Positions 34,847 to 62,689 of a DNA stretch of 64,000 nucleotides are shown here, piece after piece. Each line of letters opens with the position of its first letter. Positions within the stretch are counted from its first letter, which is position 1. The position numbers and the translations under genes were made by a program. Source of the stretch: Macrostomum lignano (taxonomy: Eukaryota); contig NIVC01001348.1 in assembly GCA_002269645.1 (NCBI GenBank), positions 1-64,000 on the forward strand, read 5' to 3'. A model generated the notes under the pieces. It ran no database searches and had not been told where the DNA came from. It was given only the letters and a program-made list of their open reading frames with translations.

Positions 34847-35439
34847 GCTCTGTCTACTGCTTCTATTTCTTGCGGAGTTTCTCTCTGTATTTTTGCTGCT
34901 TTTAGCAACTGTAGCTACAGAAGGAAGGCTTTCTCCTTTTCCATAGGGTGGAGTCAAGAGCATTCAAGAGCCGAAATGATTTTTTTCTCGCCTTGGTCCT
35001 TTGCCCCCCCCCCCCCTGTTTCTCGCTTTCTCAATTTCTGCGCTATGCTAGCAGAACTCCAGTTTGAGCACAAATTCAGCTTAAGCGAGTAATCCGTACT
35101 GAACCAAATCGATAAGTTTTTAGCGGGGGTTAGAGAGAGAGAGAGAGCAAAGCCACCGCAAAGCTGCTCAGCGAGGCATGATGTAAGAACAGTTTATTAG
35201 GTTTACAATCTCAAGCTGATTTGGTTTCAACATGCATTAATAAATGCGAGTGCGTGCGTTTTTGACGTACCTTCATAAAATTTGCAGACACTGCATGAAT
35301 TCCAAACTGAGGATAAGACGACGCCCAGGGTCTCAGAGGTCTCAGACTTTGCCGTTGGACTCCTTGTGTTGCGAAATCTGAACTAGAACAAGAGCGAATA
35401 TCGGAAGCAGAACCAGACAAAACAACCAGAAATAGAAGA

Positions 35440-40200: not shown

Positions 40201-43200
40201 GAGCGGATGAAGAGTCAGAGCCAGCGCAATTTCACAATCAGCAAGAAGTCTGGCGGCGAGGTGAGCGGAGGTTGCTTAAGCTGATTGCTTAAACTTGCAC
40301 TCCGTGACCCTGGTCAGCGATATCCTGTTTTAGAGCAGCTTCTCACGCAATTCGATTTAGATTATTCTAGTTTTAATTTTTAATCTGAATAATTTCTTCC
40401 CAACTCATTGCCAAGGACTACTCAAGTCCTTGAGTACGTTTCTTGGAAAATTTTAAAAGACAGGTTTCACCAAAAAACGTACAATCGTACATGCCCCGTG
40501 CCTAAAATCATAAGAATGGCAAAAACTCTCTCGACTTATTGGTTTTATGAATCTGTTTTATGAATTTTTGTTTAAATGACTGTGAAACAATATGTGTAAC
40601 AGAATGATAAAATAGATTCATAGAACCAATAAGTCGAGAGAGTTGTTGCCATTCTTATGATTGTTAGGCACAGGATATAAAATTAACACAGAATTATATA
40701 TTTTAATGAGAAGCTTTATGAACATCAATAGAGCTATAAGAAGGGCAAGACACATCAAAAGAAGAACATTGGGTCTGCCTTCTATCAGAAGCAATAACAA
40801 CAGAGCCAGAAGCTGAAAACATGAAAACCTTCTATCTCGGCATTGTTTTTCAAGAGGTTTTCCAAGAAACGTTGTTTCCCATCTTTCTACTTGAGCAGTC
40901 CTTGCTAATTGCATTAAAATTAGTAGTAGTTTTTGTAATTGACCACCTGTACACCAAAAGCCATCATTCAAAGCCTGTTCACTATGTTGAATTCATATGA
41001 AAAAGTCGAATTCATAAAAGACCAAACACATTCTTAATTACCAAATTGTAGGCTGACGCCAAGAAGCAGGTAAAAATTAACGGGAAAGCAAATCGATTCC
41101 CGGTGGAAATTTGACCCTCCTCTAGGAGCCAAGAGTTTCAAATGCGTTAGTCAAGGGTGCACGCTCCGTACTAAGCCATCAATGTATAAAATGCACGATC
41201 GCGGGAGGTGGCACTAACGAACTGTTTCCCAAGTTGTTAAACACGGACCGGGCATTCGCCAGTTATTACTATAAGTAGAAGCCTTAGCAACTATTCGGTA
41301 ACAAGTTGGCCGCATCTTTAGTCGAAATTTATTGCGCATCGAAAACCAACTATTCACCTTGCATTTGCTCTCAGTCCTTGACCTGAATTGAATGACCACG
41401 CAAACCCAATATTGGATCATTTTTAATGCGTACATCTGGGCGATGCATGTATTTTTTAATACCAGTGGAATTCATAGAAATTATCGATCGATAGAGACTG
41501 TATGCTGGCCTTGGCTAGGCGGAGTGAGGTGGCTGCATGGTCAGGGAAAGGGGTAGAGTAAATAAGGGTAGAATGCCACTGTACAATGGAAGGCGCAATG
41601 TACATTTACAAGAGCTCAACCAATCAGAATCGCCTTTTGTTAATTTTTTAATTAACCGCAGGCTGGAGCCTCCGGCGCGGACGAAGCCAAGCAGGGCAAG
41701 TCCAAGGAGCAGCTGGAGGCCGAGAAGAAGGCCGCTCTGGAGCAGCGGGTTCAGCCGCTGAATATTGACGGATTCAGCGAGTCTCAGCTGCAGGAGAAGG
41801 CCAAGGAGCTGTTCTCTAAGATCTACTCGCTCGAGGGAGACAAATATGATCTTGAGCAGCGGTTCAAGGGGCAGAATATGGAGGTGCGGTTTTATATGCG
41901 TGTTTTTGACTTATATAGTTTGAACAGTTTCCAGTTTGAGTAGTTTGCAGTTAGAGTAGTTTGCAGTTCGAGTAGTTTGCAGTTCGAGTAGTTTCCAGGT
42001 CGAGTAGTTTCCAGGTCGAGTAGTTTCCAGTTCGAGTAGTTTGCAGTTCAAGTAGTTTGCAGTTCGAGTAGTTTGCAGTTCGAGTAGTTTACAGTTTGAA
42101 CAGTTCGTAGTTCAAGTACTCGAAGTTTCTCATCAAAGTTGCAAATACGATTCGAATTTCAGATGGTCGAGCTCACAGAGCGCGCTCGTCAGATGCAGAA
42201 GGGGTGCGTGTGCATTGTTTTGAAGGATTTCTATCAGGAAGTCGTTAACAAAACAGCTTTGTAATAAAAATCGATTAAAACACTCAAATCTTCCTTTTAA
42301 ATTCTCAGAGGCCAGAAGGGATCCAGCAGCAAGGTTCAGACTGCTCCGTAAGTCGAAACTGCCGCTAATATTTCGTAAAAAAACAACAGAGTAAAGATAA
42401 ACCCAATAAATTATCTTTGTTTTGCATTGTCATTTTTAGTGACCCGCTGTCCGAGAAACTTGGCAGCATCCCGGTAAGCAAAGCAAGGCTCCGACTTTTA
42501 ATTATCTGTTCCATTCGGCCACTCCCCGTGCTCTTCCGCTTCTTTCCGCTCCGCTTCTTTCTGTTCCGCTTCTTTCTGTTCCGCTTCTTTCTGTTCCGCT
42601 TCTTTCTTTTTCGCTTCTTTCTGTTCCGCTTCTTTCTGTTCCATTCCGCTTCTTTCTTTTTCGCTTCTTTCTGTTCCACTTCTTTCTGTTCCGCTTCTTT
42701 CTGTTCCGTTCCGCTTCTTTCTTTTTCGCTTCTTTCTGTTCCGCTTCTTTCTGTTCCGCTTCTTTCTGTTCCGCTTCTTTCTGTTCCGCTTCTTTCTGTT
42801 CCGCTTCTTTCTGTTCCGCTTCTTTCTGTTCCGCTTCTTTCTGTTCCGCTTCTTTCTGTTCCATTCCGCTTCTTTTTTTCGCTTCTTTCTGTTTCGCTTC
42901 TTTTTTTCGCTTCTTTCTGTTCCGCTTCTTTCTGTTCCGCTTCTTTCTGTTCCGCTTCTTTCTGTTCCGCTTCTTTCTGTTCCGCTTCTTTCTGTTCCGC
43001 TTCTTTCTGTTCCGCTTCTTTCTGTTCCGCTTCTTTCTGTTCCGCTTCTTTCTGTTCCGCTTCTTTCTGTTCCGCTTCTTTCTGTTCCGCTTCTTTCTGT
43101 TCCATTCCGCTTCTTTTTTTCGCTTCTTTCTGTTTCGCTTCTTTTTTTCGCTTCTTTCTGTTCCGCTTCTTTCTGTTCCGTTCCGCTTCTTTCTGTTCCG

Positions 43201-43542
43201 CTTCTTTCTGTTCCGCTTCGTTCCGCTTCGTTCCGCTTCGTTCCGCTTCGTTCCGCTTCGTTCCGCTTCGTTCCGCTTCGTTCCGCTTCGTTCCGTTCTC
43301 CATGAGAAGCTCCGCGCCGCCCGCAGCCGAAGATCGTGATGTACAGCCAGTACGAGCGAGTCAAAGACCACCGCGGCTTCGGCGAGCGTCAGGATCTGTT
43401 CAAAGGCCCGATCTACGGCATCGAGTACGAGCGGATCAAGCCCAGCTCGAAGGTCATCCTGACTGAGAGCGGGCCGAGGGCCGTCGAGATCACCGAGAAC
43501 GGTGACGAGCCAGCGCCAGCCGCCGTTGAGGCAGCCGAGTGA
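37243..43542 (+). CDS. TnT: Troponin T (invertebrate type), 12 coding exons, 368 aa
   Basis: Exons 37243-37262, 38540-38674, 39042-39081, 39188-39304, 39899-39985, 40123-40260, 41052-41069, 41662-41883, 42163-42203, 42309-42347, 42440-42473, 43327-43542; total 1107 nt in frame. Acidic N-terminus MADEENQEPTVEEE, E/K/R coiled coil, RNFTISKK, KSKEQLEAEKKAALEQRVQPLNIDG, KAKELFSKIYSLEGDKYDLEQR, PPKIVMYSQYERVKDHRGFGERQDLF. The 18-nt exon is the least certain. Confidence 0.92.
37555..38300. repeat. 21-bp minisatellite (CTAAAATGAGTGCCTGCGGCG)n in troponin T intron 1
   Basis: About 35 units; related to 8005-8835; right flank ends ...GACGACGCCCCTG, which looks like a TIR. Confidence 0.95.
39325..39785. 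repeat. 24-bp minisatellite (GTCACTCTGGTGTGCTATTATCTT)n in a troponin T intron
   Basis: About 19 units starting about 20 nt after the donor at 39305. Confidence 0.92.
41925..42110. repeat. 16-bp tandem repeat (AGTAGTTTGCAGTTCG)n in a troponin T intron
   Basis: About 11 units. Confidence 0.9.
42535..43295. repeat. 15-bp (TTCCGCTTCTTTCTG)n grading to 10-bp (TTCCGCTTCG)n in the last troponin T intron
   Basis: Direct reading; source of several spurious 290-350 aa ORFs. Confidence 0.95.
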
Positions 43543-45306: not shown

Positions 45307-46745
45307 TTAAGCATCCGAATGCGGTCTGAGCTGCTGCTGCAGCTGTTGCCGGTGCTCTTGAAAAAACTGTCTGTACTGAAGAGGCTGTTGCTGCTGATGA
45401 GGTGCTGATGAGGTAGTTGTTGGCGGTGGCGGCGGTGCAAACCTAACGGGCCTGGGCGGCCTCAGCTGCTGCTGCGGCAAACTCGAAGCCACTGCCGTGT
45501 GCCCGGCGCCCCACCGGGCAAAGCTGAATCCGCTCTCAGACTGTCCCAGGCCGATGCCGCTGTCGTGCGAACCAATCGGCTCGGCCTGCTGTTGCTGCTG
45601 CTGCTGCGGAGGCGGCGGCGGAGGCAGCGGCAGAGGAAGCTGTTGATGCGGCTGCTGGACAAGCAGCTGTTCGAAGTTCGCTCGCGCCGTCGCCAGCTGC
45701 TCAGCTGATTCCGTCGCTTGGCGCCGACGCAGCGCCGCCTCCTGGCGCCAGCGGCGCGCCTCGGCCTCAGCGTCGGCCAGGCGGAGCTCGCAGGCCTCCA
45801 GGCGGAGCCGCAGCTGCTGACCGGCCAGCCGCTCGGACTGATAGCGGGCCCGCAGCTGACGAGCCTGGCTGAGGAGCCGCTCGTACCGCCCGTCTCCGCC
45901 GCCACCGCCGCCGCCGCCGCTGCCGCCGCAAAAGTCGCCATAGTCGTCATCGAAGCCGTTGCTGCCGGTGAGCTGCGAGTTCATCGAGGTCATAGAATCT
46001 GCGCCGGGGGTGTACTCCAGAACCTGCGTGCAGAGGAAGACAGGCATTGATCCCTCTCCCCTCAGATGGGTAAATAAATGTTCGCAGAAGGGCCGCGGGC
46101 ATCCTGGAGCAACCCTTTCAACGACATCGTATGAATACCACAGCCAGCGCTGAAGGCAACTCTGAAGACAGCCCTGACTTTCTAATCGTTAGGCATGTAC
46201 ACTCTCTGTGATTTTGAGGTTGGCGCCCTGATGGCTGTGAATCGCAAGAAAACCCCCAGGCCAAGTTTAGTGCAAAAGCTATAAGATTAGATGCGTCCGC
46301 GCACGGATTCGAACCCTTGGCTCCCCGCGGAGACTGAGTTATTGCCTTGAAAAGCTAAGGATCCCCGAGAATGCATGTAGGATTCAATAAATCCAACGAA
46401 AAAATAAAAAACTGAGTTCTTGAAAACTGCGATCTCCAGGTTCCGTTACCCGGATAGAAAGTCGCAAAAGCAAAAGACAAATTACTTGGCACCTGGCTAA
46501 AATTCGAACCCCCACCTGGCCCAGTCGACCCGTTCGCCCGTACGACAATCCGGGCGAAGTCAGCCGGGCAGGCAGCTGGGCGCCGACAATTTCGTGGTCG
46601 CTCTGTGATCTCGGCATCATTGACATTCCGCCCGCCACCGCTGATGCAGCCGCAGGCGCCGCCGCCGACGCCACTGGCGACATTCCGGCAGTCGGCGTCG
46701 GAGTCGCTGACGGAGACAGAGTTGCGGAGGCTTCGACGTTGCCCG

Positions 46746-46776
<31 letters not shown>

Positions 46777-49700
46777 GCCGCTGCGAGAGCCTCGCCAGAA
46801 CAGATGCCGCAAGCCACCGCCGCCGCGTCGCTTCGATGTCTCCGACGTCGACGCTGCTGGGTTAGTTGACGACGCTGACGCTGCCGACTCGCTTTGATGT
46901 CCGGCAACGGCGTCGACTGTCTGCGAGCGCGGCAGGTTGGTCGATTTCCACTTCTTGGAGCGGAAAAACAGACGCCGCTTTTTGTCCTTCGGCTTGGCCG
47001 CCTCGCCCGCCGAGGCTGCGCCTGCGGCTGCCGACGCCGAGAGCCCCGCCGATGCGTTGCGGCTGCCGATGCTGTCCGCTGAGGAGCAGGTCGGCAGCTG
47101 GTTCGACGACGGACTGGGCGACGGCAGGCCGGAGCTGCTGAATGGCGCGCCAAGACTGCTGTAGGTTGTTGCCGGGCCTGAAGGTGAGGGAGAGCACCGG
47201 GTGTGTCTGTCCCGATGTGTCTGTCCCGATGTGTCTGTCCCGATGTGTCTGTCCCGATGTGTCTGTCCCGATGTGTCTGTCCCGATGTGTCTGTCCCGAT
47301 GTGTCTGTCCCGATGTGTCTGTCCCGATGTGTCTGTCCCGATGTGTCTGTCCCGATGTGTCTGTCCCGATGTGTCTGTCCCGATGTGTCTGTCCCGATGT
47401 GTCTGTCCCGATGTGTCTGTCCCGATGTGTCTGTCCCGATGTGTCTGTCCCGATGTGTCTGTCCCGATGTGTCTGTCCCGATGTGTCTGTCCCGATGTGT
47501 CTGTCCCGATGTGTCTGTCCCGATGTGTCTGTCCCGATGTGTCTGTCCCGATGTGTCTGTCCCGATGTGTCTGTCCCGATGTGTCTGTCCCGATGTGTCT
47601 GTCCCGATGTGTCTGTCCCGATGTGTCTGTCCCGATGTGTCTGTCCCGATGTGTCTGTCCCGATGTGTCTGTCCCGATGTGTCTGTCCCGATGTGTCTGT
47701 CCCGATGTGTCTGTCCCGATGTGTCTGTCCCGATGTGTCTGTCCCGATGTGTCTGTCCCGATGTGTCTGTCCCGATGTGTCTGTCCCGATGTGTCTGTCC
47801 CGATGTGTCTGTCCCGATGTGTCTGTCCCGATGTGTCTGTCCCGATGTGTCTGTCCCGATGTGTCTGTCCCGATGTGTCTGTCCCGATGTGTCTGTCCCG
47901 ATGTGTCTGTCCCGATGTGTCTGTCCCGATGTGTCTGTCCCGATGTGTCTGTCCCGATGTGTCTGTCCCGATGTGTCTGTCCCGATGTGTCTGTCCCGAT
48001 GTGTCTGTCCCGATGTGTCTGTCCCGATGTGTCTGTCCCGATGTGTCTGTCCCGATGTGTCTGTCCCGATGTGTCTGTCCCAATGTGTCTGTCCCGATGT
48101 GTCTGTCCCGATGTGTCTGTCCCGATGTGTCTGTCCCAATGTGTCTGTCCCGATGTGTCTTTTTTCAATGTGTCTAACTGTCTGTCCCAGTTCGTCCGCC
48201 CTGATGTGTCTTTTTGTTGTGTCTGACCCAATGTGTCTGTCCTGATGTGTCTGTCTGTAGGTGGCTGTTCTCGATGTGTATTTCTCAATGTGTCTGTCCC
48301 GATGTGTCTTTCTCGATGTGTTCACCCTAATGTGTCTTTCTTGGTCTGTCTGTCCCGATGTGTCTTATCCGATGTGTCTGATCCGATGTGTCTTTACATG
48401 TGAATTAGTTATATATTTTAATTCCTCGTCCTGTTTATTTGCAACACTTGCTACTCACATCCAGTGTGGTCAGTAGTACAGATCAGCTTCTAGGTACCCA
48501 AACTGACTCACCATATTTGTCTCCGTAGAGGCGGCTGCGCAGGTCCATCAGGCTGCGCAGCTGCTTGCACAGCTCGCTGGCCGAGATGCGCAGCTGGGGC
48601 ACCTGAAGTTTTGGGGGAACGGGCGGTGGAGACTGCTATCGCTGGCCGGCTTTCACTTTTTTTCAAGTCCCTGAGTTCGAGTCCGCCGCGCGGCCACACT
48701 GATCTGAGGCTCGAGCACCACTCTGTTGTATTCTATATTTTTGTGTATTCATTTCATCAAAATTCACCTGTGTGAGTATTGACAACTTTGGCTTATGAAA
48801 TAAATAGAAATGAATGTGAAAAAGCAACTTTCACTACAAAACTACACGAAATACAAAAATAGAATGGTTATCTTCACTAGGCCCCAGATCGAATGCAATC
48901 ATTGATTTTGTGATTTCAAGGGGACTTTTTATTATCTCAGCAGTGTATTTTTTCAGGAAATTCGCCCCCTAAGAACTAAACTATCCTTGAGTTTTGCGAC
49001 CTGTTATGCTACAATGGTCCTTGGTCGAACTGTTTCCTTAAATGTTCTCCCCCTTAGTGGCATTTTAAGTCAGTCTCCAGTCCAGATGCTTTACTGAGTC
49101 CCTGGCTTGGGGATAACTGCTCTAGCTACTCAACACTAATTATGAGCCTCACCTCGTACAGGCAGGACCGCACCAGGTGTTCCAGCGAGCCGGCCAGCTC
49201 CCTGGGCAGCAGGCCGCAGCCCAGGCTGAGACCTTCCTCAGCCAGCAGGTCCCGGCGCCGCTGCCTGCCGCCGCTGCCGCCGCCGCCGATGGTGAAGGCC
49301 GACCAGAGCAGCAGGCCGAACGCCCAGATGTCGGCCGCGGAAGTCGCCACCGAGGCCGACGCCGCGTCGGCCGCCGCCGACTCCGGGCAGGCCGGACTCA
49401 CCCGGCAGCAGCGGCGCCACAGCAACTGCACCTGAGGCGGCGGCTCGGAGGACTCAAATCTGGCGAATAACAGGCCGCCCAGCTTCACTGTGAACCGGTC
49501 TGTGCGCTCCATCAGGCAGTTCTCCAGCGTCTGGGAGGAAGGTAAAATACTCTAGCGAGATTTTTTAATACACCTGCCCCAATGGCTAGATGTTCAACCG
49601 ACAGCTCAGCCGCAGCTATTGCGCGGCGCATTTGAAGGCTGCGTACGGCTGTTCAGTCCAAGGACTGGGGGGAGGGGGGGGGTCGCCACACACCCTCAGT

Positions 49701-52700
49701 TACCCCAGCTATTGCTGGCACCCATTTTACAGCTGGGTGAACTGAAGCAATGCAGAGAGTTAAGAGCCAGGCCACTCACCAAGTCGCAGTGCAGGACGCC
49801 CTTCCTGTGCAGGTAGGCCAGCCCGGCCGCCGCCTGATGCGCCAGGCTCACCAGGATCTCCCAATCGTGCAGGAGGCGGTCGCCTTGCCGCAGCAAAAAC
49901 TGTCGCAGGTTGCCGCAGTTGACGTGCTCAACCACCAGGGTGTAGCGGCTCTGGCTGGGCAAGTACAGGCCCAGAAGGCGGAGCACGTTTGCGTGGTCCA
50001 GGCGCCTGGGATGATAGGCGATTTTTAGAGGGAAATTTTTAAGAGTTTGCCAGTTTTTTTGGGTCTAAAACTGAATTCTAATGGCTGGCTAATCTGTACA
50101 TTTCATTTCTGTCTAATCTATAGATTTAATGGCTGTCTAATCTCTGGATCTAATGGCTGTCTAACCTATGGATCTAATAGCTGTCTAATCTATAGATATA
50201 ATGGCTGTTTAATCTATATATCTAATAGCTGTCTAATCTATGGATCCAATAGCTGTCTAATCTATAGATATAATGGCTGTTTAATCTATATATCTAATAG
50301 CTGTCTAATCTATGGATCCAATAGCTGTCTAATCTATATATCTAATGGCTGTCTAATCTATATAATTTTGTTATGTAATTCCAATCCAATCTCATAATGA
50401 AGTGAGAATCTTGAAGCATGATAGTCTCTAAGCATGAGAATCGAAGCATGAGAAAGCATGAGAATCTAAGCATGAGAATCTAAGCATGAGAATCTAAGCA
50501 TAATTATCCAAGCATGATAGGGGATATCCATTTGTCTAAAAATATTTAAAATATTTTCTCACTTACATAAGAATGAACGCCTCATTCCTCAAGCAGGCGG
50601 TAATGTCGCTGGAGTTGTGCCTCCGGGTCACCGCAGTCACAGCCTCCGATCCGTAGCGACCTTGATGAAACGTCTGAAAAAATGGCGGAAGAATTTTGAC
50701 TTAAAAAATTCTTTCTTAGGAAAAATAAGAAGTCCGTTTTTTGCCCACCGATGACACACGCAAGAACCCGTGGGATTCTTCCATGCATGTAACCTTGCGT
50801 GTTTCTAGATTTCAACCGGCCCCCCAAACGCGGGCGCGCCATCTGCTGGAGACCGCGGCTTCGGCAATGTTCTTTTCTATTTTTTCTCTGTTTGAAAGCA
50901 GCCGTTCGAGTGATTGATTGGGGCAGGTGCCACTGGGCGCGTCTACTTGTGCCTCATCGTGTGGGATACTAATGACTTTACAAAATAGTTGGCTGTTTGG
51001 TTTCAACTGGCATGGCCATGACTGGTCTCTCCATGTGCAGGCTTGATGTCGGCTTGGGCGAGATTTGAATGGCCAGTGTCCTCTTGTACAGCTGTGTAGA
51101 TGCGTGGGTTCTATTGTACAGCTGTGTAGATGCGTGGGTTCTATTGTACAGCTGTGTAAATGCGTGGGTTCTATTGTACAGCTGTGTAGACGCGTGGGTT
51201 CTATTGTACAGCTGTGTAGATGCGTGGGTTCTATTGTACAGCTGTGTAGATGCGTGGATTCTATTGTACAGCTGTGTAGACGCGTGGGTTCTATTGTACA
51301 GCTGTGTAAATGCGTGGGTTCTATTGTACAGCTGTGTAGATCGGTGGGTTCTATTGTACAGCTGTGTAGATCGGTGGGTTCTATTGTACAGCTGTGTAGA
51401 TCCGCTATGCTAAATATTGTAAGCAAAGTTGTAAACTGGATGGAAAACCTCAGTAAGCGCTGCTGCTTACTAGCCAAGGTCCGGCGATAAAATTTATAAT
51501 TAATTAGATTCCTCATAAAACAAAGTCCTATAAATGTTTCTCCCCGTTGGCGTACGCTCGTAGAGACAATTCTATTAAATGTATTTCATTTTCTAGTGTG
51601 GCTGGCCATCTGGCCATCAGTTGTTTACTTTGACGTTTGAATAATATGTGCTGAGCTGCTAGGGTTTTGAGAATGATATTATTGAATTTGATATTACTAC
51701 TGGACTCAACTGACTGATAGGAACTTATAGACCGGAAGTGAGCATATAAGACCCGATTGATAGACCGGAAGCGAGTGTATTAAACCCGATTGATAGATCG
51801 GAATTAAGCGTATTAAACCCGATTGATAGACCGAAAGTGAGCGCATTAGACCCGATTTATAGACCGGAAGTGGGTGTATTAAACCCGATTGATAGACCGG
51901 AAGTGAGCGCATTAGGCCCGATTTATCGACCGGAAGTGAGTGTATTAAACCCGATTGATAGACCGGAAGTGAGCGCATTAGACCCGATTGATAGACCGGA
52001 AGTGAGTGTATTAAACCCGATTGATAGACCGGAAGTGAGTGTATTAAACCCGATTGATAGACCGGAAGTGAGCGTATTGAACCCGATTGATAGACCGGAA
52101 GTGAGCGTATTAAACCCGATTGATAGACCGGAAGAGCGCATTAGACCCGATTGATAGACCGGAAGTGAGTGTATTAAACCTGATTGAAAGACCGGAAGAG
52201 TGTATTAGACCCGATTGATAGACCGGAAGTGAGCGCATTACACTGAATCGACCGATCGGAAATGCAAACATGAGGCCCCGTGGACAGAAACAACGTCTCA
52301 CCGTCAGCTGCGACTCTGTGCCGTCGGTGCACTCGGAGCCCAACTCGATGTCGTCCACTGGCAGCCGCAGGAAAGCTTCAACGTCTGCGGAGCCGGGGTG
52401 TCCCGCCAACAGCTGCCCGAGACTGCGGCAGGCTCGGTACCTGTCAATCATTTGTCGGACGCTAGCGAATTTCTCGTGCCGAAGCACGTAGCACTGGCCG
52501 TCGTCATCGCGGTGAATCCACAGGTGCTTCACGGTTGAGTCGCTTCTGCAGAAGTGAAGGAGAAGGAGGCTTTTTGAAGAGGTCCAGTTTCAAAAGACTT
52601 TTGAAGAGGTCCAGTCTCAAAAGCATTTTGAAGAGGTCCAGTCTCAAAAGCATTTTGAAGAGGTCCAGTCTCAAAAGCATTTTGAAGAGGTCCAGTCTCA

Positions 52701-54194
52701 AAAGCATTTTGAAGAGGTCCAGTCTCAAAAGCATTTTGAAGAGGTCCAGTTCGAGCACATTTTAAAATTATAACCGCCATCCTGTTTTGTAAGCTCGGTT
52801 CTGGGACGCATCAGCTACCGATAGGAAAGAAAGCGAGATTCTGCATCATTTTCCCACTTGGTCATTTTTCCTGCCAATTTTAGCGAATTCTAAAGTGGCT
52901 GCCGCAATGGCGGTCAGTTTGGGTAGAGGAGCACCGGCACACTGTGTACCTGCTTTTGCTGACCAACCTCTCTTCATTGCAGGACACGGAAGTTCGGGGC
53001 ATCCCAGCGGGTGGTGCGACATGAAGACAGTAGCCTCTTTAGCCAACCGGTGCCTGTGGTTTCCCGTCAACTGTGGTTTAGCTTAGGAAAAGCGGGACAC
53101 TGGTAGCTAGCTAATTAGCATAATTAATGCGAATTCCAGGCCCACATGTACAGGCCGCCGAGCTGTCAGTCAGGCGGTAGCTGCATTTGGTGCAATAAAT
53201 TGGCGATGTTGCACAACATATACAAGGTTCAAGTCGCTACAGATGATGAGGACCCGCTGAAGTTTCCTGTAACTGAATGCACAGTTTTATGCTAAATCCC
53301 CTCGTTAAATAATCTCCTAGCTAGATAATTCCCTAGCTAGATAATCCCCAAGCTAGATAATCCCAAGCTAGATAATCCTCAAGCTAGATAATCCCCTAGC
53401 TAGAAAATCCCCAAGCTAGATAATCCCCAAGCTAGATAATCCCCTAGCTGAAAAAATCCCCAAGCTAGACAATCACTAGCTAGATAACCCTTTCGATAGA
53501 TAATCCCCAAGCTAGATAATCCTTTAGATAGATAATCCCCAAGCTATATAATCCCCAAGCTATATAATCCCCAAGCTAGATAATCCCCTAGCTAGATAAT
53601 CCCCTAGCTAGATAATCCCCTAGCTAGTAATCCCCTAGCTAGATAATCCACTAGCTAGATAATCCTTTCGATAGATAATCCCCAAACTAGATAATCCGAT
53701 AGCTAGACAATTCCCTATGTAGATAATCCCCAAGCTAGATAATACCCTAGCTAGATAATCCTCTAGCTAGATAATCCCCTAGCTAGATAATCCCCTAGCT
53801 AGATAATCCCCTAGCTAGATAATCCCCTAGCTAGATAATCCCCTAGCTAGATAATCCCCTAGCTAGATAATCCCCTAGCTAGATAATCCCCTAGCTAGAT
53901 AATCCCCTAGCTAGATAATCCCCTAGCTAGATAATCCTTTGGATAGACAATCCCCTATCTAGCTAATCCATAGCTAGACAATCCCATACATTATTCGAAC
54001 TGCAGCCAAATCCCCGGATCAGCAGCCGCCGCACTCACACAAAGGACAGGGCCAGCCTGCGCTTGAAGCTGCGCACCAGGAAGCTGCCCTCCGGCATCGG
54101 GCCCAGCACCGCCGTGGCCAGCAGTGGCGCCATTTCCTGAAAGAACCAGGCCTCCTCCCGGATGTCCGGCATTCGAAATTTGGCTGGATCGTAT
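45307..54194 (-). CDS. SH2 domain + tyrosine-kinase-like pseudokinase + low-complexity/coiled-coil tail; 5'-incomplete, 8 exons, at least 859 aa
   Basis: Exons 54194-54039, 52545-52302, 50673-50567, 50005-49780, 49530-49153, 48602-48512, 47177-46516, 46023-45307; all AG/GT and phase-compatible. SH2: AWFFQEM...EGSFLVRSF...LALSFV...VKHLWI...[11 protein letters not shown]. Kinase fold: [84 protein letters not shown]. Confidence 0.88.
47200..48390. repeat. 14-bp satellite (GTGTCTGTCCCGAT)n, near-perfect core of about 65 units, degenerate distal end
   Basis: Fills intron 47178-48511; the repetitive parts of the 340-630 aa ORFs are artefacts. Confidence 0.97.
49561..49766 (-). mobile_element. 5'-truncated copy of CORE-like SINE family B in a pseudokinase intron
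   Basis: The reverse complement matches about 29755-29945 (CTTCAGTTCACCCAGCTGTAAAATGGGTGCCAGCA...CCTTGGACTGAACAGCCGTACGCAGCC...GCAATAGCTGCGGCTGA). Confidence 0.88.
50080..50362. repeat. 24-bp tandem repeat (TAATGGCTGTCTAATCTATAGATC-like)
   Basis: About 11 units in intron 50006-50566; a short (TAAGCATGAGAATC)n follows at about 50428-50518. Confidence 0.88.
51085..51400. repeat. 30-bp minisatellite (CTATTGTACAGCTGTGTAGATGCGTGGGTT)n
   Basis: About 10-11 units. Confidence 0.93.
51715..52250. repeat. 33-bp minisatellite (GATTGATAGACCGGAAGTGAGCGTATTAAACCC)n containing ETS-consensus ACCGGAAGTG
   Basis: About 16 units, about 11 with an intact ACCGGAAGTG. Confidence 0.93.
52573..52750. repeat. 27-bp tandem repeat (TTTTGAAGAGGTCCAGTCTCAAAAGCA)n, about 6.5 units
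   Basis: Direct reading; lies next to the acceptor at 52546. Confidence 0.92.
53315..53985. repeat. 16-bp minisatellite (CTAGCTAGATAATCCC)n
   Basis: About 42 variable units. Confidence 0.93.
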
Positions 54195-54484: not shown

Positions 54485-55162
<678 letters not shown>

Positions 55163-55859
55163 CAGGGATACTCAATTCTCAACTTTCTCCCACTATACTG
55201 GCCCCTCTCTAACATCCCAAAATGTCAGTTAAACTGCAGTTTGCAGCTGAGCGCCGCACCACCATCGCAGCACACAATGGCATGACTGAAGTTCCTCTCC
55301 CAACTCAAACTGACCCCATCGATCAAGGGTCTAACAGCCAAAAAATGAACCGAAATTAGCCCCAAAGCCTCAGCCCTCCTGCGGTCAGATACTGACAGAC
55401 ATGCTCGAACTTTTGGTTTGACACAGGCCCCCCAGGCTGGCCGCCACCCGCTGGTCGAGTAAATATTTATCGGCGGTCGCTAAGCCCCGCCTCGTGCGCG
55501 AAAAAAACCGCACAAGGTCGCACAAGTGGCCGCTATTTGGCCCCTGAAAATAATTATCTTAAACCGGCACTTCAGTGGCTGGGGGCATATCAGGTCGAAC
55601 TAGATGGTATTTTTAAAGATATCTTAGGAATTCCCAGGCCACGCAGTGTATAGCTATGGATTGAAGCTGATTGACAAGGACAGGCGGGAGGTGTCGGTTT
55701 CGCACCTGCACTCTTTCTAGTTGAGCATTGGGCAATGGGGAATTGGTTGCTATGCGCAAAAAACGATCCCCTTCTGGGGCATAATGATACTTTATACATT
55801 TTAAGCTCTGCAGTCTTGACCACCTCTCTGCAATTTGAATCGGTCACCTCTCTCGTCTA

Positions 55860-56450
55860 GCACTCTCTCCCTCTCTCCCTCTCTCCCTCTCTCCCTTTCT
55901 CCCTCTCTTCCTCTCTCCCTCTCTCCCTCTCTCCCTCTCTCCCTTTCTCCCTCTCTTCCTCTCTCCCTCTCTCCCTCTCTCCCTCTCTCACTCTCTCCCT
56001 CTCTCTCTCACTCTCTCCCTCTCTCCCTCTCTTCCTCTTTCCCTCTCCCCCTCTCTCTCATTCTCTCCCCCTCTCTCTCATTCTCTCCCTCTCTCCCTGT
56101 CTCCCTTTCTCCCCTCTCCTCCCTCCTCTCTCCTCTATCCCTATCTCCCTCTCTCCCTGTCTCTCTTTCTCCCTCTCTCCCTCTCTTCCTCTCTCCCTCT
56201 CTCACTCTCTCCCTCTCTCTCTCTCTCTCACTCTCTCCCTCTCTCCCTCTCTCCCTCTCTCCCTCTCTCCCTCTCTCTCTCACTCTCTCCCTCTCTCCCT
56301 CTCTTCCTCTTTCCCTCTCCCCCCTCTCTCTCATTCTCTCCCCCTCTCTCTCATTCTCTCCCTCTCTCCCTGTCTCTCTTTCTCTCTCTCCCTCTCAACC
56401 TCTCAACCTCTCGCCCTCTCTCCAGCCCCTTCTTTTCTATTCTCTCTCCT
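55860..56450. repeat. Degenerate (TCTCCC)n / CT-rich microsatellite
   Basis: Direct reading. Confidence 0.93.
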
Positions 56451-57364
56451 CCATCACTTGCTCTTTTTCTTTATCCTTCATCTTTATCTACTCACATTTT
56501 GCAGTCAGCTTGAGTCTATCAATGATACAGTAACAGTTAGTCATCAAGAATAAAAGCACCGAAAAGTCTTGCTCTGCAGACACACTAGACTGTATGCTCA
56601 GTCTCAGATCTGGCACGAACCGTCGCGCAATATGAGCTATAGACCCCCCCCCCGAATAAGTAAGTAAATTAATTCGAGTTTTACTGCTCGATTTTACCGC
56701 ACCCACGCGCTGAATGCTGATGCCGATCTTCCAAGACATCATTCGCAAGCAAAACCGAATGACGAATAAAAACATTTCTAAGTTCAAAATATGATATAGC
56801 TGAATATAGTTGCTATGCGATTAAAATCTGGGTAGCCGGAGGCCAAATTCAAGCAGTCCTTGAGAAAGAATCTGGAGCGGTCAGGTCCACTGATCAAATA
56901 AATGAGCTGCTCCTTTGCAATCCTTTCTGTCAAACGAAACTCTATATCCAGTTGTCTAGCTTCAGACGTCCTTGGCCGATTCCTGATCGGATCCCTAAGC
57001 CAGATCTGTCCGTCCCAGTTTTGTTGAAGAACAAAAAATTTTTTTCGAGGTGCGGGTCGGCCCCGGCTGAAGCAATAAAACTGCATTTTTTTCTCTCTTT
57101 CTGGACAACCCGGCGGAGATCGTAAAACTTCGGGAGGTCAACGGGGCTTATCTGATCTCGGCGCCCGTCGTGGAGACAGCGAAGACTCGCCCTGCCTCCA
57201 CCCTCCAAAGCGGAGATTTTTTAAACAAGATTTGCAACAATATTTATGCCATCTGTATAGTCCGGCTGTAGTCTGACTCACACTGTTGCGGTGCCTGCAG
57301 CTCCTGGACACCGGTTTCAGAGGGCCTGACAATAACCGCTCTGTTGTTTCTGACAGGCACTGAA

Positions 57365-57980
57365 TGGTCACTGACAACCACTGTTGTCATTGGTATATTG
57401 TTACTGGCAACCACTATGTTGTCACTGGTATATTGTCACTGGCAACCACTATATTGTCACTGGTATATTGTCACTGACAACCACTATATTGTCACTGGTA
57501 TATTGTCACTGGCAAACACTATATTGTCACTGACAACCACTATATTGTCACTGGCAACCACTATATTGTCACTGACAACCACTATATTGTCACTGGTATA
57601 TTGTCGCTGGCAACCACTATATTGTCACTGGCAACCACTATATTGTCACTGGCAACCACTATATTGTCACTGGCAACCACTATATTGTCACTGGCAACCA
57701 CTATATTGTCACTGGCAACCACTATATTGTCACTGGTATATTGTCGCTGGCAACCACTATATTGTCGCTGGTATATTGTCGCTGGCAACCACTATATTGT
57801 CACTGGCAACCACTATATTGTCACTGGCAACCACTATATTGTCACTGGTATATTGTCGCTGGCAACCACTATATTGTCACTGGTATATTGTCGCTGGCAA
57901 CCACTATATTGTCACTGGCAACCGCTATATTGTCACTGGTATATTGTCGCTGGCAACCACTATATTGTAACTGACAACTA
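57365..57980. repeat. 21/14-bp minisatellite (TATATTGTCACTGGCAACCAC / TATATTGTCACTGG)n
   Basis: Direct reading. Confidence 0.93.
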
Positions 57981-58799
57981 TTAAATAGTCCCTGACGAGT
58001 ACCCTGACTGCCTTGACAACTACAACAGTGTCCTTAGCAACCTGGCGCCCCTGCTAACTGACAAAATTTTAATTTCCACTATTTAATATTTTACACCTCT
58101 CAGCTCATAATTCTTCCCATAGAGAAACTTGGCTAAAAATATTACATAAGTGTGACGCAACCCGCTCTACATCAACGCCCAGTCTCCCAGTGATGTGGGA
58201 GGTTGAACAACATGTATTTCTCCGCATTAGTCAACAAACGAAACGTGCTATTTCGAGCTAGAGTCATCATAAAATCTTCACATGTAGGCTATATGATAAA
58301 TGTATAATATCTACATGCTCAATGAATATAGATCCTGAGAACTCCGTAGAGTATTCAAATGTGCGAAATTGCCTTTGTTGTCCTTGGGACCACCGCCAAC
58401 CCCAGCGCAGTTAGTTGCCAAGCGCAAGAAGTATAGAATATTTGCCGACACGCTAAAACAAACCTTCGCACTGCTCAGACCCTCTCGCCTACAGCACAGC
58501 CACTCCATCCAATTAAAACTATGTCTTTCTAAGCTTTCTAAGCTTGTCAATTCATTATCGCACAGGGACCGCGACATGGAGTACTGGAATTTCTATCTAG
58601 CTAGATTGAGTCGATATTTTGATGCGAAAAGTATAGAATTCTCATACCGTTTTCAACAGTAAGAATCTTTTCCTTCTCCTACAGATTGCCTTTTTAAGAT
58701 TCCAATCGCGCTTGGAGCTAAATTGGAAGTCAGTTTTGAGGACAGAGCAGCTCCATGGTTAACGCATCCGACTCTCCGCGGGTTTGATTTGGTAACCTC

Positions 58800-60840
58800 A
58801 CTGCCTCTCTAGCTCTCCTCTCCTCTCCCTGCCTCTCTAGCTCTCCTCTCCTCTCCCTGCCTCTCTAGCTCTCCTCTCCTCTCCCTGCCTCTCTAGCTCT
58901 CCTCTCCTCTCCCTGCCTCTCTGGTTCTCCTCTCCTCTCCCTGCCTCTCTAGTTCTCCTCTCCTCTCCCTGCCTCTCTGGTTCTCCTCTCCTCTCCCTGC
59001 CTCTCTGGTTCTCCTCTCCTCTCCCTGCCTCTCTAGTTCTCCTCTCCTCTCCCTGCCTCTCTGGTTCTCCTCTCCTCTCCCTGCCTCTCTAGTTCTCCTC
59101 TCCTCTCCCTGCCTCTCTAGTTCTCCTCTCCTCTCCCTGCCTCTCTAGTTTTCCTCTCCCTGCCTCTCTAGTTCTCCTCTCCCTGCCTCTCTAGTTCTCC
59201 TCTCTCTGCCTCTCTAGTTCTCCTCTCCCTGCCTCTCTAGTTCTCCTCTCCCTGCCTCTCTAGTTCTCCTCTCCTCTCTCTGCCTCTCTAGTTCTCCTCT
59301 CCTCTCCCTGCCTCTCTAGTTCTCCTCTCCCTGCCTCTCTAGTTCTCCTCTCTCTGCCTCTCTAGTTCTCCTCTCCCTGCCTCTCTAGTTCTCCTCTCCC
59401 TGCCTCTCTAGTTCTCCTCTCTCTGCCTCTCTAGTTCTCCTCTCCCTGCCTCTCTAGTTCTCCTCTCCCTGCCTCTCTAGTTCTCCTCTCCTCTCCCTGC
59501 CTCTCTAGTTCTCCTCTCCTCTCCCTGCCTCTCTAGTTTTCCTCTCCCTGCCTCTCTAGTTCTCCTCTCCCTGCCTCTCTAGTTCTCCTCTCTCTGCCTC
59601 TCTAGTTCTCCTCTCCCTGCCTCTCTAGTTCTCCTCTCCCTGCCTCTCTAGTTCTCCTCTCCTCTCTCTGCCTCTCTAGTTCTCCTCTCCTCTCCCTGCC
59701 TCTCTAGTTCTCCTCTCCCTGCCTCTCTAGTTCTCCTCTCTCTGCCTCTCTAGTTCTCCTCTCCCTGCCTCTCTAGTTCTCCTCTCCCTGCCTCTCTAGT
59801 TCTCCTCTCTCTGCCTCTCTAGTTCTCCTCTCCCTGCCTCTCTAGTTCTCCTCTCCCTGCCTCTCTAGTTCTCCTCTCCTCTCCCTGCCTCTCTAGTTCT
59901 CCTCTCCTCTCCCTGCCTCTCTAGTTCTCCTCTCCCTGCCTCTCTAGTTCTCCTCTCTCTGCCTCTCTAGTTCTCCTCTCCCTGCCTCTCTAGTTCTCCT
60001 CTCCTCTCTCTGCCTCTCTAGTTCTCCTCTCCTCTCCCTGCCTCTCTAGTTCTCCTCTCCCTGCCTCTCTAGTTCTCCTCTCTCTGCCTCTCTAGTTCTC
60101 CTCTCCCTGCCTCTCTAGTTCTCCTCTCCCTGCCTCTCTAGTTCTCCTCTCTCTGCCTCTCTAGTTCTCCTCTCCCTGCCTCTCTAGTTCTCCTCTCCCT
60201 GCCTCTCTAGTTCTCCTCTCCTCTCCCTGCCTCTCTAGTTCTCCTCTCCTCTCCCTGCCTCTCTAGTTCTCCTCTCCCTGCCTCTCTAGTTCTCCTCTCT
60301 CTGCCTCTCTAGTTCTCCTCTCCCTGCCTCTCTAGTTCTCCTCTCCCTGCCTCTCTAGTTCTCCTCTCTATGCCTCTCTAGTTCTCCTCTCCCTGCCTCT
60401 CTAGTTCTCCTCTCCCTGCCTCTCTAGTTCTCCTCTTCTCTCTCTGCCTCTCTAGTTCTCCTCTCTCTGCCTCTCTAGTTCTCCTCTCTCTGCCTCTCTA
60501 GTTCTCCTCTCCCTGCCTCTCTAGTTCTCCTCTCCCTGCCTCTCTAGTTCTCCTCTCCACTCCCTGCCTCTCTAGTTCTCCTCTCCTCTCCCTGCCTCTC
60601 TAGTTCTCCTCTCCTCTCCCTGCCTCTCTGGTTCTCCTCTCCTCTCTCTGCCTCTCTAGTTCTCCTCTCCTCTCCCTGCCTCTCTAGTTCTCCTCTCCTC
60701 TCCCTGCCTCTAGTTCTCCTCTCCTCTCCCTGCCTCTCTAATTCTCCTCTCTTCTCCCTGCCTCTCTAGTTCTCTTTCTCCCTCTCTCACTGCCTCTCAA
60801 GTTCTCTCTCCCATCTCCCACTCTTCCTCTCTCCCTATCT
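58800..60840. repeat. About 2-kb pyrimidine-rich 22/27-bp satellite (CTGCCTCTCTAGTTCTCCTCTC[CTCTC]C)n
   Basis: About 85 units, with higher-order blocks. Confidence 0.96.
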
Positions 60841-61554
60841 CTAGCTTGGAGTCAACCCATGGGCCAACCCCCACGGCACAGAGGGTGTGCATGCCTCTGA
60901 CATCGAGAAAGCCAGGGCCGCTGAAAGCCACCGGGAACATATTGTGTGAGCGCGCGTTCAGGGTTCAGAGGAATGGGCACGACTGCTTGCTTCCCGGTGG
61001 CTGCGGGTCGACTTGTCGCCTTGATTTGCGGCAGCACCCAAATTGCCCCCTGCAAAAAAGTCTAAATAGTCAGTTTCCCTGTCCAGATACTTTATTTAGC
61101 ACTCCCCGGCCGCAGACAATTGCCAGCAGCGCTTGCGAGACAATAAAAATGCATGTCCAATCTGCCCCCCCAGCTGAGCCGCCACCCAGCGGGACCCCCC
61201 ATCTGCCCTTCTCATTGCAATCTGCAAATTGGCTACTCAAACTCAAATTTGGACAAGCTAAACTTAAAGGCATTGTAAAACTTCTATGCACAATATGGTC
61301 CCAAGATTTATGCACCCCTTGGATAGAGATGATATTGTGGGGGGGGCGGTGGGGTTGGTGAGACAGTTCTCAGAACTTGTCAAATCTAATGTTTAGCTGT
61401 CTACTTACTTCAAGGGCTTTACCTCTGTAGCAGCAACGACGATTTTATCGTTAGACAGGAAAAATTAATTAGCGGATATTAGTTTATTAGGTATAAACTT
61501 GCAGAATAATTAAGCTAGGTAATTGGAATAAATCACTTAGATTTCTCCCTCCAT

Positions 61555-61870
61555 ATCTGTATATCTATCTAGATTTCCCTAGGTCTTCATAGATCTCTAT
61601 AGATCTCTCTAGTTCTTCCTAGATCTCTATAGATCTCTCTAGGTCTTCCTAGATCTCTATAGATCTCTCTAGGTCTTCCTAGATCTCTATAGATCTCTCT
61701 AGATCTTCCTAAATCTCTCTAGATCTCCCTAGATCTCTCTAGATTTCTCTAGATCTCTCTAGGTCTTCCTAAATCTTCCTAGATCCCCCCAGGTCTTTTT
61801 AGATCTTCCTAGATCTCTCTAGATTTCTCCAGATCTCTCCAGGTCTTTCTAGATCTCTCTAGATCTCCCT
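61555..61870. repeat. 10-bp repeat (TAGATCTCTC)n, degenerate
   Basis: Direct reading. Confidence 0.88.
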
Positions 61871-62689
61871 AGATCTCTCTCATGCCTCATCAGATTTTCT
61901 ATTTCTAGGCCACACCCTAAATCTCTTAAATTCTTTTTTCTCCATCTCTAGACGTCGCTAGATCTCATGCTAGGTTTTTAGACTTTTCTCAATACATAAA
62001 ATATTTACTCTTTAGATTTTCTATAGATGCTGGCTAAATAATTCATTGGCCAACTACCATTCGAGAATATATTGATTTCAACTAAGTGTATTTTTAAGCC
62101 TCTTGGCGTGTGTGGCATCTACAGCAGAGAAGGCGTAAATTTACTTGGGAATTGAGACTCTTCAACCAATTTTCTCCATTTAGCCAAATAAAATCTCAGA
62201 GACACTTCATCGGGCACTTTGAGTGGTGAGAAAATTTTCAGCAAATTACTGCAACTCGACTCTGAAGGACTGACTAATGTCATTTGTTGGCTGAGGAAAT
62301 TCACTCATCTAGTCTGGGACAGCGGGTCTGGGCAGCATTAGGTCACACTACTACATATAGATGATGTTCGAGAGGCACTTTGCCAAGGCTTAGGGATGTC
62401 ACTAGCTACAGTATACCTCTAGCTGGCACAAATGGATACACAAATCAGTCAGTCACTGGCCAGCTTTGGAAATTAGGGATTACGCAACGTTGCAGAATGG
62501 ATTAGGCAATCTCGGCTAAGAAAGCAGTAACTAAGAGAGAGGGCAAATACTGTTGCTTTTCTGGTGGAATTTTCTGCAGGAAGATTGGCAGTCTGAGGGA
62601 AGGAGCAGCACTAATTGATTTGGCGGCAAACTTCCCGTCAGCACCAGCAGGCTTTAGTTATACTGCAGTGCCGGTATTTCTGGATGTTT

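Follow-up and report, generated by a model that had tools for sequence, protein, structure and literature searches.

Does the gene on the minus strand at 45307..54172 of the Macrostomum lignano sequence analysed here encode a cytoplasmic tyrosine kinase that lost its catalytic motifs within the flatworms, or is it one member of something older, and from which kinases is it derived? The sequence in question (the window) comprises positions 1 to 64,000 of contig NIVC01001348.1 (GenBank assembly GCA_002269645.1), and all coordinates refer to it unless another locus is named. A preliminary description, made from the letters of the window alone, regarded the gene as coding for a lineage-specific SH2-pseudokinase-coiled-coil protein acting as a scaffold or dominant-negative adaptor. 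On the evidence given below the locus is probably a functional M. lignano gene of an old, apparently undescribed metazoan family of cytoplasmic pseudokinases derived from Tec/BTK kinases.

Domain composition and catalytic motifs

The predicted protein of 852 amino acids (aa) yields two Pfam matches above cut-off, SH2 at aa 9-81 (37.8 bits, cut-off 21) and, directly downstream as described before, PK_Tyr_Ser-Thr at aa 138-378 (92.4 bits, cut-off 23.1). The best match of the single sequence in the PDB was Fes/Fps (3bkb) with an E-value of 1e-21, the alignment extending from aa 5 to aa 381 across the SH2 and kinase domains. In this alignment the Gly-rich loop, GRGNFGEV in Fes, reads TDGTESQL, strand beta3 lacks its Lys (EAVTAVTRR), and HRDLAARN is replaced by HCDLTLEN, with loss of the Arg and retention of the HRD Asp and the catalytic-loop Asn; these replacements had been recognised in the preliminary description, as had the persistence of the alphaC Glu (E157) and of DIWAFG. 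The APE Glu and the subdomain-XI Arg are also kept. Regarding the DFG motif, the loss of the Asp stands, whereas the earlier reading 'GGL' was one residue off; the register taken from Fes and from the family alignment gives GLL (G256-L257-L258). A pseudokinase lacks at least one of the VAIK Lys, the HRD Asp and the DFG Asp, and here both the beta3 Lys and the DFG Asp are gone. In the SH2 domain the FLVR Arg (R34) is invariant in 17/17 aligned sequences and the betaD His (H52) is nearly invariant.

An AlphaFold2 model of aa 1-394, built with a 17-sequence alignment, shows a canonical SH2 domain and a bilobal kinase fold with a mean predicted local distance difference test (pLDDT) of 87.5 and a predicted template modelling score (pTM) of 0.83, so that the fold proposed from the sequence is modelled confidently. 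The SH2 region reaches a pLDDT of 90-97, and low confidence is confined to aa 322-328, a Gly-rich insert, and to a portion of the activation segment. In a Foldseek comparison with the PDB, the top structures for the SH2-kinase unit were Abl, Fes, Csk and Src, and the kinase domain alone matched that of FGFR2 with a template modelling (TM) score of about 0.8. The arrangement of SH2 and kinase relative to each other has no close match in any one structure (TM 0.5-0.6 overall).

Relatives in other animal phyla

A profile of the window protein and its M. lignano paralogue was compared exhaustively by HMMER with 1.84 billion representative proteins, and the best 150 matches were used. Two proteins labelled "uncharacterized", one from Lineus longissimus (XP_064631962.1, LOC135490620; E 1e-45) and one from Nematostella vectensis (XP_001641821.3, LOC5521937; E 2e-36), align from the SH2 domain to the end of the kinase domain and score above the mass of ordinary tyrosine kinases. 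Reading out the columns of the family hidden Markov model (HMM) in the 150 listed matches added members from Acropora palmata, A. millepora, A. muricata and A. digitifera (including LOC114959827; labels "uncharacterized", "Src42A-like" and "BMX-like") and from the hemichordate Ptychodera flava (labelled "abl-1-like").

Every member carries Gly at the position of the DFG Asp, within VK(L/I/V)(G/S)G(F/L)xxAR, and a catalytic loop of the form H-x-(D/E)-L-x-x-x-N devoid of the HRD Arg, which begins with HNE in Lineus, Ptychodera and the M. lignano paralogue, with HGE in the cnidarians and with HCD in the window protein. The GxGxxG loop and the beta3 Lys occur in no family member, and the alphaC Glu is replaced in the relatives by A, Q, H or Y. 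Virtually all active kinases among the 150 matches listed have HRD...N and DFG. Invariant throughout the family alignments are the APE Glu, DxWxxG, the subdomain-XI Arg, the catalytic-loop Asn and the FLVR Arg.

In a tree of 37 SH2-kinase sequences, calculated by neighbour joining and thus distance-based, with long-branch effects possible, the family was monophyletic in 200/200 bootstrap replicates for SH2 plus kinase, 198/200 for the kinase domain only and 170/200 for the SH2 domain only. For the comparison of introns the genes of Nematostella (21 exons) and Lineus (13 exons) were mapped exactly, in addition to the paralogue. Five introns of the window gene share position and phase with Nematostella and three of these also with Lineus (Table 1), which supports common descent and, independently of RNA data, validates the splice model of the window gene.

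Because the same degenerate motifs are present in Cnidaria, Hemichordata and Nemertea, the motifs of the ATP site had been lost before the cnidarian-bilaterian split and not in flatworms. The attribute 'lineage-specific' is refuted by these relatives in Nematostella, four Acropora species, Ptychodera and Lineus. Searching proteins by word index, with the single sequence or with either of two family alignments as query, yielded nothing beyond M. lignano proteins, RYK-like receptors and bacterial kinases, and known members went undetected. The taxonomic distribution, taken from the best 150 matches of the exhaustive search, must therefore be regarded as a lower bound.

Probable Tec-type ancestry

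A PH domain, BTK motif, SH3 domain, SH2 domain and kinase domain, in this order, define the architecture of the Tec family. According to Pfam, the longest isoforms of Nematostella, Acropora and Ptychodera have an N-terminal PH domain and a BTK zinc motif followed by SH2 and kinase, which is the order found in the Tec kinases (BTK, ITK, TEC, BMX, TXK and MbTEC of Monosiga). A four-sequence family profile run against the PDB placed the SH3-SH2-kinase unit of BTK first (177 bits), followed by ABL1 (174 bits), Fes (149 bits) and Src (148 bits), with ITK and BTK as the best kinase-only chains; among the matches listed, the active kinase scoring best against the family HMM was a PH-BTK-SH3-SH2-kinase protein. 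On direct reading of the sequences, the linker carries L-x-(K/R)-Y-P and the kinase domain opens with W-x-x-D, both reminiscent of the Src module. Tec kinases end at the kinase domain, whereas the family adds a disordered coiled-coil tail of 270-750 residues; unlike Tec kinases, the family has a degenerate kinase domain in every member and an SH2 domain that lacks the alphaA2 Arg, and it does not fall inside the Tec clade of the tree. Taken together, these features favour regarding the family as a pseudokinase branch that derives from Tec and predates the cnidarian-bilaterian split. This Tec/BTK-type ancestry, the point missed in the preliminary description, is proposed from architecture and not from phylogeny, and the window protein would be called Tec-like rather than a Tec kinase.

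Several observations weigh against such a reading. The BTK motif scores 24.0, 20.7 and 26.9 bits in Nematostella, Acropora and Ptychodera, respectively, at or near the cut-off of 24 and in both cnidarians at or below it. The stretch between BTK motif and SH2 is SH3-like in the cnidarians, with a sub-threshold SH3 match in Nematostella alone (E 0.013); between the BTK motif and SH2 of the other family members no SH3 domain was detected. The Lineus protein has no detectable PH domain or BTK motif, and both M. lignano proteins begin at the SH2 domain, with PH, BTK motif and SH3 absent by Pfam and by tblastn at the two loci. A Tec clade sister to the family was recovered in only 20/200 bootstrap replicates, and the long branch of the pseudokinases is drawn to other long ones; since the tree leaves the sister group open, the Tec origin rests on domain architecture together with a narrow lead of BTK over Abl in the profile comparison. 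Further points of this kind are that the SH2 domain of every family member has no alphaA2 Arg and a BC turn of about 2 residues; that the HRD Asp, the catalytic Asn and the alphaC Glu are retained in the window protein, in contrast to its relatives; that the similarity of the tail between the flatworm and other phyla does not exceed that of shuffled controls (z < 2); that the estimates of selection given below are rough; that upstream exons beyond the edge of the window are formally possible; and that the gene is known here from sequence and predicted models alone.

In a different pedigree, the family would descend from Fes/Fer (or Abl), and the proteins of cnidarians and hemichordates would have gained their PH domain and BTK motif by exon shuffling. 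Fes/Fps is the best PDB match of the single flatworm sequence, Fes and Abl structures head the Foldseek list, ABL1 lies only 3 bits below BTK, the tree recovers no supported sister group, and Fes and Fer, like the family, combine coiled coils with an SH2-kinase unit. We nevertheless regard this pedigree as unlikely. Once the profile spans other phyla Fes falls to 149 bits against 177 for BTK, and the long forms carry PH and BTK in Tec order, even if the BTK motif does not exceed the cut-off in the two cnidarians. Fes and Fer are active kinases with an N-terminal F-BAR domain and coiled coil, whereas the family has C-terminal coiled coils and is devoid of the catalytic motifs; Pfam detected neither an FCH/F-BAR domain nor an F-actin-binding domain in the window protein or among the five family members scanned. 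Membership in Fes/Fer was rejected on architecture despite the first PDB match.

Proposed function

Under a Tec-type origin, the ancestral protein would have consisted of a PH domain, a BTK zinc motif, a degenerate SH3-like stretch, an SH2 domain, a pseudokinase domain and a long disordered tail with coiled coils, a layout that may still be seen in the sea anemone, the corals and the acorn worm, while the flatworm copies start at SH2. With its conserved FLVR Arg and betaD His, the SH2 domain would dock on phosphotyrosine sites that active tyrosine kinases generate; the SH2-pseudokinase unit could provide a rigid docking or allosteric surface; and the heptad helix of the tail would render the protein dimeric or higher-order. 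Phosphotyrosine signalling complexes could in this way be assembled or sequestered without catalysis, and the basic-aromatic motifs of the flatworm tail may, speculatively, replace the lost PH domain in membrane association. The function would thus most likely be that of a non-catalytic phosphotyrosine-binding scaffold or competitor self-associating via its tail; phosphotyrosine binding, scaffolding, oligomerisation and membrane association are all properties that we infer. The role of scaffold or dominant-negative adaptor given in the preliminary description is plausible. Owing to the missing alphaA2 Arg and the short BC loop, phosphotyrosine binding could be weakened or altered and the ligand preference may be unusual; judged from its conserved residues, binding by the SH2 domain is likely, not certain.

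Regarding catalysis, although the tyrosine-kinase fold remains well packed, the loss of the Gly-rich loop, the HRD Arg and the Mg-binding DFG Asp throughout the family makes it very unlikely that the kinase domain could transfer phosphate. An atypical working enzyme or a nucleotide-binding allosteric switch, which would bind ATP and either phosphorylate weakly by a non-canonical route or control a partner, is accordingly given little probability, about the same as a Fes/Fer or Abl pedigree. HCD, the catalytic Asn and the alphaC Glu are all present in the window protein, making some nucleotide binding possible; Arg143 and Arg144 adjoin the beta3 position, and the fold is predicted with high confidence. 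Some pseudokinases without the DFG Asp still bind nucleotide, and both STRADalpha and JAK JH2 bind ATP. However, the Gly-rich loop and the beta3 Lys are missing and the DFG Asp is replaced by Gly in every member, and the relatives have in addition lost the HRD Asp (HNE/HGE), the catalytic base, and the alphaC Glu; hence these two residues are not constrained across the family, a point against a conserved role in catalysis or one dependent on nucleotide.

In its widest form, which appears to us neither more nor less probable than its opposite, the proposal is that of a previously unrecognised, eumetazoan-wide, non-catalytic Tec branch, a PH-BTK-SH2-pseudokinase-coiled-coil scaffold possibly furnished with a PDZ ligand. 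It would have arisen before the cnidarian-bilaterian split, persisted for over 600 million years in cnidarians, hemichordates, nemerteans and free-living flatworms, apparently been lost from vertebrates and the ecdysozoan models, and served as a non-enzymatic reader or regulator of phosphotyrosine and, ancestrally, also of phosphoinositide signalling.

Paralogue and selection

The paralogue PAA84360.1 (BOX15_Mlig000806g1, 671 aa) has the same layout of SH2 domain, degenerate kinase domain and tail and is 57% identical to the window protein over SH2 plus kinase. At its catalytic positions the beta3 Lys is replaced by Asn and the alphaC Glu by Ala, the catalytic loop reads HNELVLDN and the DFG region VKVSGLEFAR. 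The two proteins are thus degenerate in different ways, as predicted if constraint on catalytic positions was relaxed after an older loss. The paralogue is encoded by seven exons on a second locus (L001); its introns 1 to 6 coincide in position and phase with those of the window gene, and exon 3 measures 107 nt in both.

Over SH2 plus kinase the two paralogues differ by a dN of 0.38 and a dS of at least 1.07, which is saturated; the resulting omega values, 0.36 by the method of Nei and Gojobori (NG86; an upper bound) and 0.014 by maximum likelihood, are therefore rough. The tail evolves faster than SH2 plus kinase. The window gene is under purifying selection and is not decaying; with a dN/dS between the M. 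lignano paralogues below 1, the neutral decay that would have spoken against an intact gene was not seen. A flatworm-specific, recently degenerated copy, decaying or neo-functionalised, as originally proposed, could appeal to the many duplicated genes of M. lignano, to several near-identical copies in UniProt and to the low-complexity, fast-evolving tail, but is highly improbable in view of the same degenerate motifs in four other phyla or classes, the shared introns, the monophyly of the family, an open reading frame (ORF) intact over eight exons and a dN smaller than dS.

Just downstream of both genes lies a convergent troponin-like gene (about 39040-43520, plus strand, in the window; 27945-31570, minus strand, on L001). 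The two troponin-like genes are collinear, with 50-94% amino acid identity per exon-sized high-scoring segment pair, so that the paralogues stem from duplication of a block or of the whole genome. Intron 3 of the paralogue (L001, 16441-22083) contains ORFs of 1400-1850 codons in all three forward frames, as is typical of a very long tandem repeat and comparable to the introns of the window gene.

Gene model of the window locus

The features of the gene are compiled in Table 1. All seven junctions combine a GT donor with an AG acceptor. With boundaries set by splice consensus and phase, the eight exons give a continuous in-frame ORF of 2559 nt with 852 codons and the stop codon TAA, in agreement with the stop-free splicing described before. 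Six of the seven introns start with GTGAG or GTAAG, and a pyrimidine-rich tract precedes each AG. The introns are 249-1628 nt long, and distinct tandem arrays occupy most of them.

The window gene is already predicted in databases, and the annotation nowhere marks it as a pseudokinase. UniProt A0A1I8I8K7 (798 aa, automatic name "Tyrosine-protein kinase") represents the same M. lignano gene; its junctions agree with ours for exons 1-6 and for 7/8, and the two models diverge solely in the 5' part of exon 7. Several partial, near-identical M. lignano models of the gene are also present in UniProt. The reading frame assigned to the 5' half of exon 7, a stretch open in all three frames, is the least secure element of the model. 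Support for the frame chosen comes from the splice phase, from a different gene model (P0011) and from a motif common to the paralogue. An alternative phase-0 donor (CAA/GTAATT) lies about 42 nt downstream in the region of exon 7.

The start Met is conserved with the paralogue, the two genes share no similarity upstream of it, and the reading frame stays open for 47 codons ahead of the ATG. Exons coding for PH, BTK or SH3 were not found when the N-termini of the relatives were compared by tblastn with the window and with 10 kb upstream of the paralogue (E >= 1 throughout; F-BAR was not queried). By visual reading, without a Pfam scan, the 9.8 kb upstream on the minus strand consist mostly of tandem repeats and contain no long ORFs. 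A kinase-like exon that would restore the Gly-rich loop, VAVK or DFG, the alternative raised in the preliminary description, was found nowhere in the 64-kb window. A string resembling the N-terminus of an SH2 domain in intron 2 just upstream of exon 3 (50791-50678, minus strand; ...DFLFFLRK) was discarded as probably due to chance (E 0.4 with a Fes-like query).

Table 1. Coordinates and content of the SH2-pseudokinase-coiled-coil gene, its introns and the tandem arrays within them (CDS, coding sequence; intron positions are given by the flanking residues)
Feature	Position	Strand	Content
Whole CDS	45307..54172	minus	8 exons, 852 aa + TAA
Exon 1	54172-54039	minus	aa 1-45; start Met and first half of SH2; phase-2 donor
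FLVR (exon 1)	54082..54071	minus	
Intron 1	after LSF, phase 2		common to Nematostella, Lineus
Exon 2	52545-52302	minus	aa 45-126; remainder of SH2, SH2-kinase linker, start of kinase domain
SH2 betaD His segment (exon 2)	52532..52515	minus	
beta1 and degenerate Gly-loop (exon 2)	52343..52305	minus	
Intron 2	LT/TF, equivalent LPW/AI, phase 0		common to Nematostella
Exon 3	50673-50567	minus	107 nt, aa 127-162
beta3 EAVTAVTRR (exon 3)	50646..50620	minus	Lys absent
alphaC (exon 3)	50595..50569	minus	E157 retained
Intron 3	in Met after IL, phase 2		common to Nematostella, Lineus
Exon 4	50005-49780	minus	aa 162-237; hinge, alphaD-alphaE, first half of catalytic loop (HCDL)
Intron 4	after H-x-(D/E)-L, phase 0		common to paralogue, Nematostella, Lineus
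Exon 5	49530-49153	minus	aa 238-363; TLEN (catalytic-loop Asn kept); activation segment without Tyr
Stretch with DFG Asp replaced by Gly (exon 5)	49488..49459	minus	
ACPE (exon 5)	49392..49381	minus	
DIWAFG (exon 5)	49332..49315	minus	
Gly-rich insert (exon 5)	49287..49249	minus	low pLDDT
Intron 5	CLYE/V, equivalent CLRT/D, phase 0		common to Nematostella
Exon 6	48602-48512	minus	aa 364-394; last kinase helices, subdomain XI with Arg kept
Intron 6	about 30 residues after intron 5, phase 1		Nematostella counterpart at similar distance
Exon 7	47177-46516	minus	aa 394-614; Ala/Ser/Gly-rich disordered tail
Basic-aromatic motif 1 (exon 7)	46983..46933	minus	aa 459-475; conserved with paralogue
Basic-aromatic motif 2 (exon 7)	46833..46780	minus	aa 509-526; conserved with paralogue
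Exon 8	46023-45307	minus	aa 615-852 + stop; poly-Gly, then heptad helix
Heptad helix (exon 8)	45888..45652	minus	
Pro/Gln tract (exon 8)	45639..45586	minus	
DSG-containing Ser/Gly stretch (exon 8)	45570..45532	minus	aa 766-778
Intron tandem arrays	47202-48393, 50077-50364, 51084-51401, 51727-52240, 52572-52750, 53295-53985		

Four of the larger introns (1, 2, 3 and 6) each contain a distinct tandem array of their own; the units measure 14, 24/72, 30, 33, 27 and 16 bp, with as many as 85 copies, and the 14-bp array stops some 20 nt short of the acceptor of exon 7. Arrays of a similar kind occupy the 10 kb upstream of the gene (54500-63926). Strings resembling the T-arm of transfer RNA (tRNA), GGTTCGAATCC and GTTCGAGTCC, occur in introns 7, 5 and 4 (46290-46330, 48650-48700 and 49590-49760), and a longer element common to other parts of the window translates as ...ESDALT... 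in several places. Together these strings and the shared element suggest a tRNA-derived short interspersed nuclear element (SINE); no tRNA gene was called by ARAGORN at the T-arm-like strings.

C-terminal tail

The long tail described downstream of the kinase domain indeed carries a heptad-like helix. One unbroken a/d heptad register extends over the 79 residues from aa 660 to aa 738 (z = 4.7, 1/2000 shuffles), and AlphaFold2 run on aa 615-790 predicts a single 80-residue helix at about aa 658-737 with a pLDDT of 95-98 and disordered flanks. Tail features common to both M. lignano paralogues are a basic-aromatic motif, RRL(G)FFRSKKWKS(T/A)NL, and the heptad helix (...CELRLADA...W(R)Q...). The tails of all family members comprise 270-750 residues with helical, charged segments; between Nematostella/Acropora and Ptychodera their similarity reaches a z of about 2.6. 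A supposedly conserved Cys motif in the coiled coils (CELRLAD / SCKDKLD / KCLREVE) was dropped, as Smith-Waterman comparisons against locally shuffled tails gave no significant similarity of the flatworm tails to those of other phyla.

The basic-aromatic motifs resemble polybasic membrane- or calmodulin-binding segments, and a similar stretch, RERRRQWRNWFCR, is seen in Ptychodera just after the kinase domain. All tails examined contain the tripeptide DSG in a Ser/Gly context (SQDSGIACG in the paralogue, SSDSGVSL in Lineus, RSDSGSRRNS in Nematostella). This recalls the DSGxxS phosphodegron; its position relative to the coiled coil varies, and it may be due to chance in Ser-rich sequence. The C-termini of Nematostella and Acropora (...PQTTL), Lineus (...KVTLL) and Ptychodera (...TESNV) fit the pattern of class-I PDZ ligands (S/T-x-hydrophobic-COOH), and those of the flatworm proteins are ...HSDA (45310-45324, window protein) and ...LESD. 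This distribution suggests an ancestral PDZ-mediated localisation, maybe lost in M. lignano.

Comparison with other pseudokinases

JAK kinases, like the family, have an SH2 or SH2-like domain directly before a pseudokinase derived from a tyrosine kinase, and JAK1 is among the top PDB matches. The JAK pseudokinase is situated between FERM-SH2 and the active JH1 domain, whereas the window protein has no FERM domain and one kinase domain according to Pfam. JAK JH2 binds ATP, and the ATP-site residues of the window protein are more degenerate than those of JH2. Membership in JAK was rejected because FERM and a second kinase domain are missing, the downstream part consisting of only a low-complexity tail and one helix.

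The PEAK pseudokinases dimerise through helices and use long disordered regions to scaffold phosphotyrosine signalling. PEAK1, PRAG1/Pragmin and PEAK3 are thus similar in working principle only, as they show no sequence relationship to the family and lack an SH2 domain; their dimerising helices flank the pseudokinase, whereas the window protein has a single long heptad helix far downstream.

PTK7/CCK4, RYK, ROR and ErbB3 are, like the family, pseudokinases of the tyrosine kinase group conserved across metazoans, and PTK7 and RYK-like proteins are found among the sequence matches of the window protein. They are transmembrane receptors without SH2, whereas the family is cytoplasmic; in the family no signal peptide or transmembrane segment was evident on reading the sequences by eye, no predictor having been used.

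Novelty and significance

Tec kinases such as BTK and ITK are heavily studied drug targets, and the evolution of Tec is usually told as that of one active lineage leading from choanoflagellates to five mammalian paralogues. A conserved dead sister lineage with a coiled-coil tail of its own would, if true, fill a gap in this history. The family would also join the short list of ancient cytoplasmic pseudokinases derived from tyrosine kinases, beside JAK JH2, and would constitute a natural experiment on the SH2-kinase unit with catalysis removed. As members are present in the tractable models Nematostella and Macrostomum, the latter amenable to RNA interference and transgenesis, the function is directly testable. 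A Tec-derived family of this age is evolutionarily more interesting than a flatworm-specific pseudokinase, its mechanism being one that we infer.

In the databases the family members figure only as "uncharacterized" or under wrong labels, and "Tyrosine-protein kinase", "abl-1-like", "Src42A-like" and "BMX-like" wrongly imply an active enzyme. The SH2-pseudokinase-coiled-coil family is apparently undescribed. Literature searches, which included a holozoan tyrosine-kinome classification (PMC8662651), a study of early-holozoan phosphotyrosine (PMC4342544) and one of the ancestral Tec kinase from 2026 (PMC13648279), found no published Tec-like or SH2-bearing cytoplasmic pseudokinase family and no description of one with the same architecture; Kwon et al. 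(2019) may list it in their survey of the pseudokinome.

Other features of the window

A single ORF of 318 aa at 19892-20848 on the plus strand has a signal-peptide-like N-terminus, two Cys-rich repeats (...C.HRLG.DCR...) and a hydrophobic C-terminal tail, and may belong to a gene for a secreted or glycosylphosphatidylinositol-anchored protein. An ORF of 194 aa at 34379-34963 on the minus strand, with several hydrophobic helices and a DRL motif, is a putative exon of a G-protein-coupled receptor-like gene. At 27799-28824, also on the minus strand, an ORF codes for 341 aa of acidic, low-complexity sequence.

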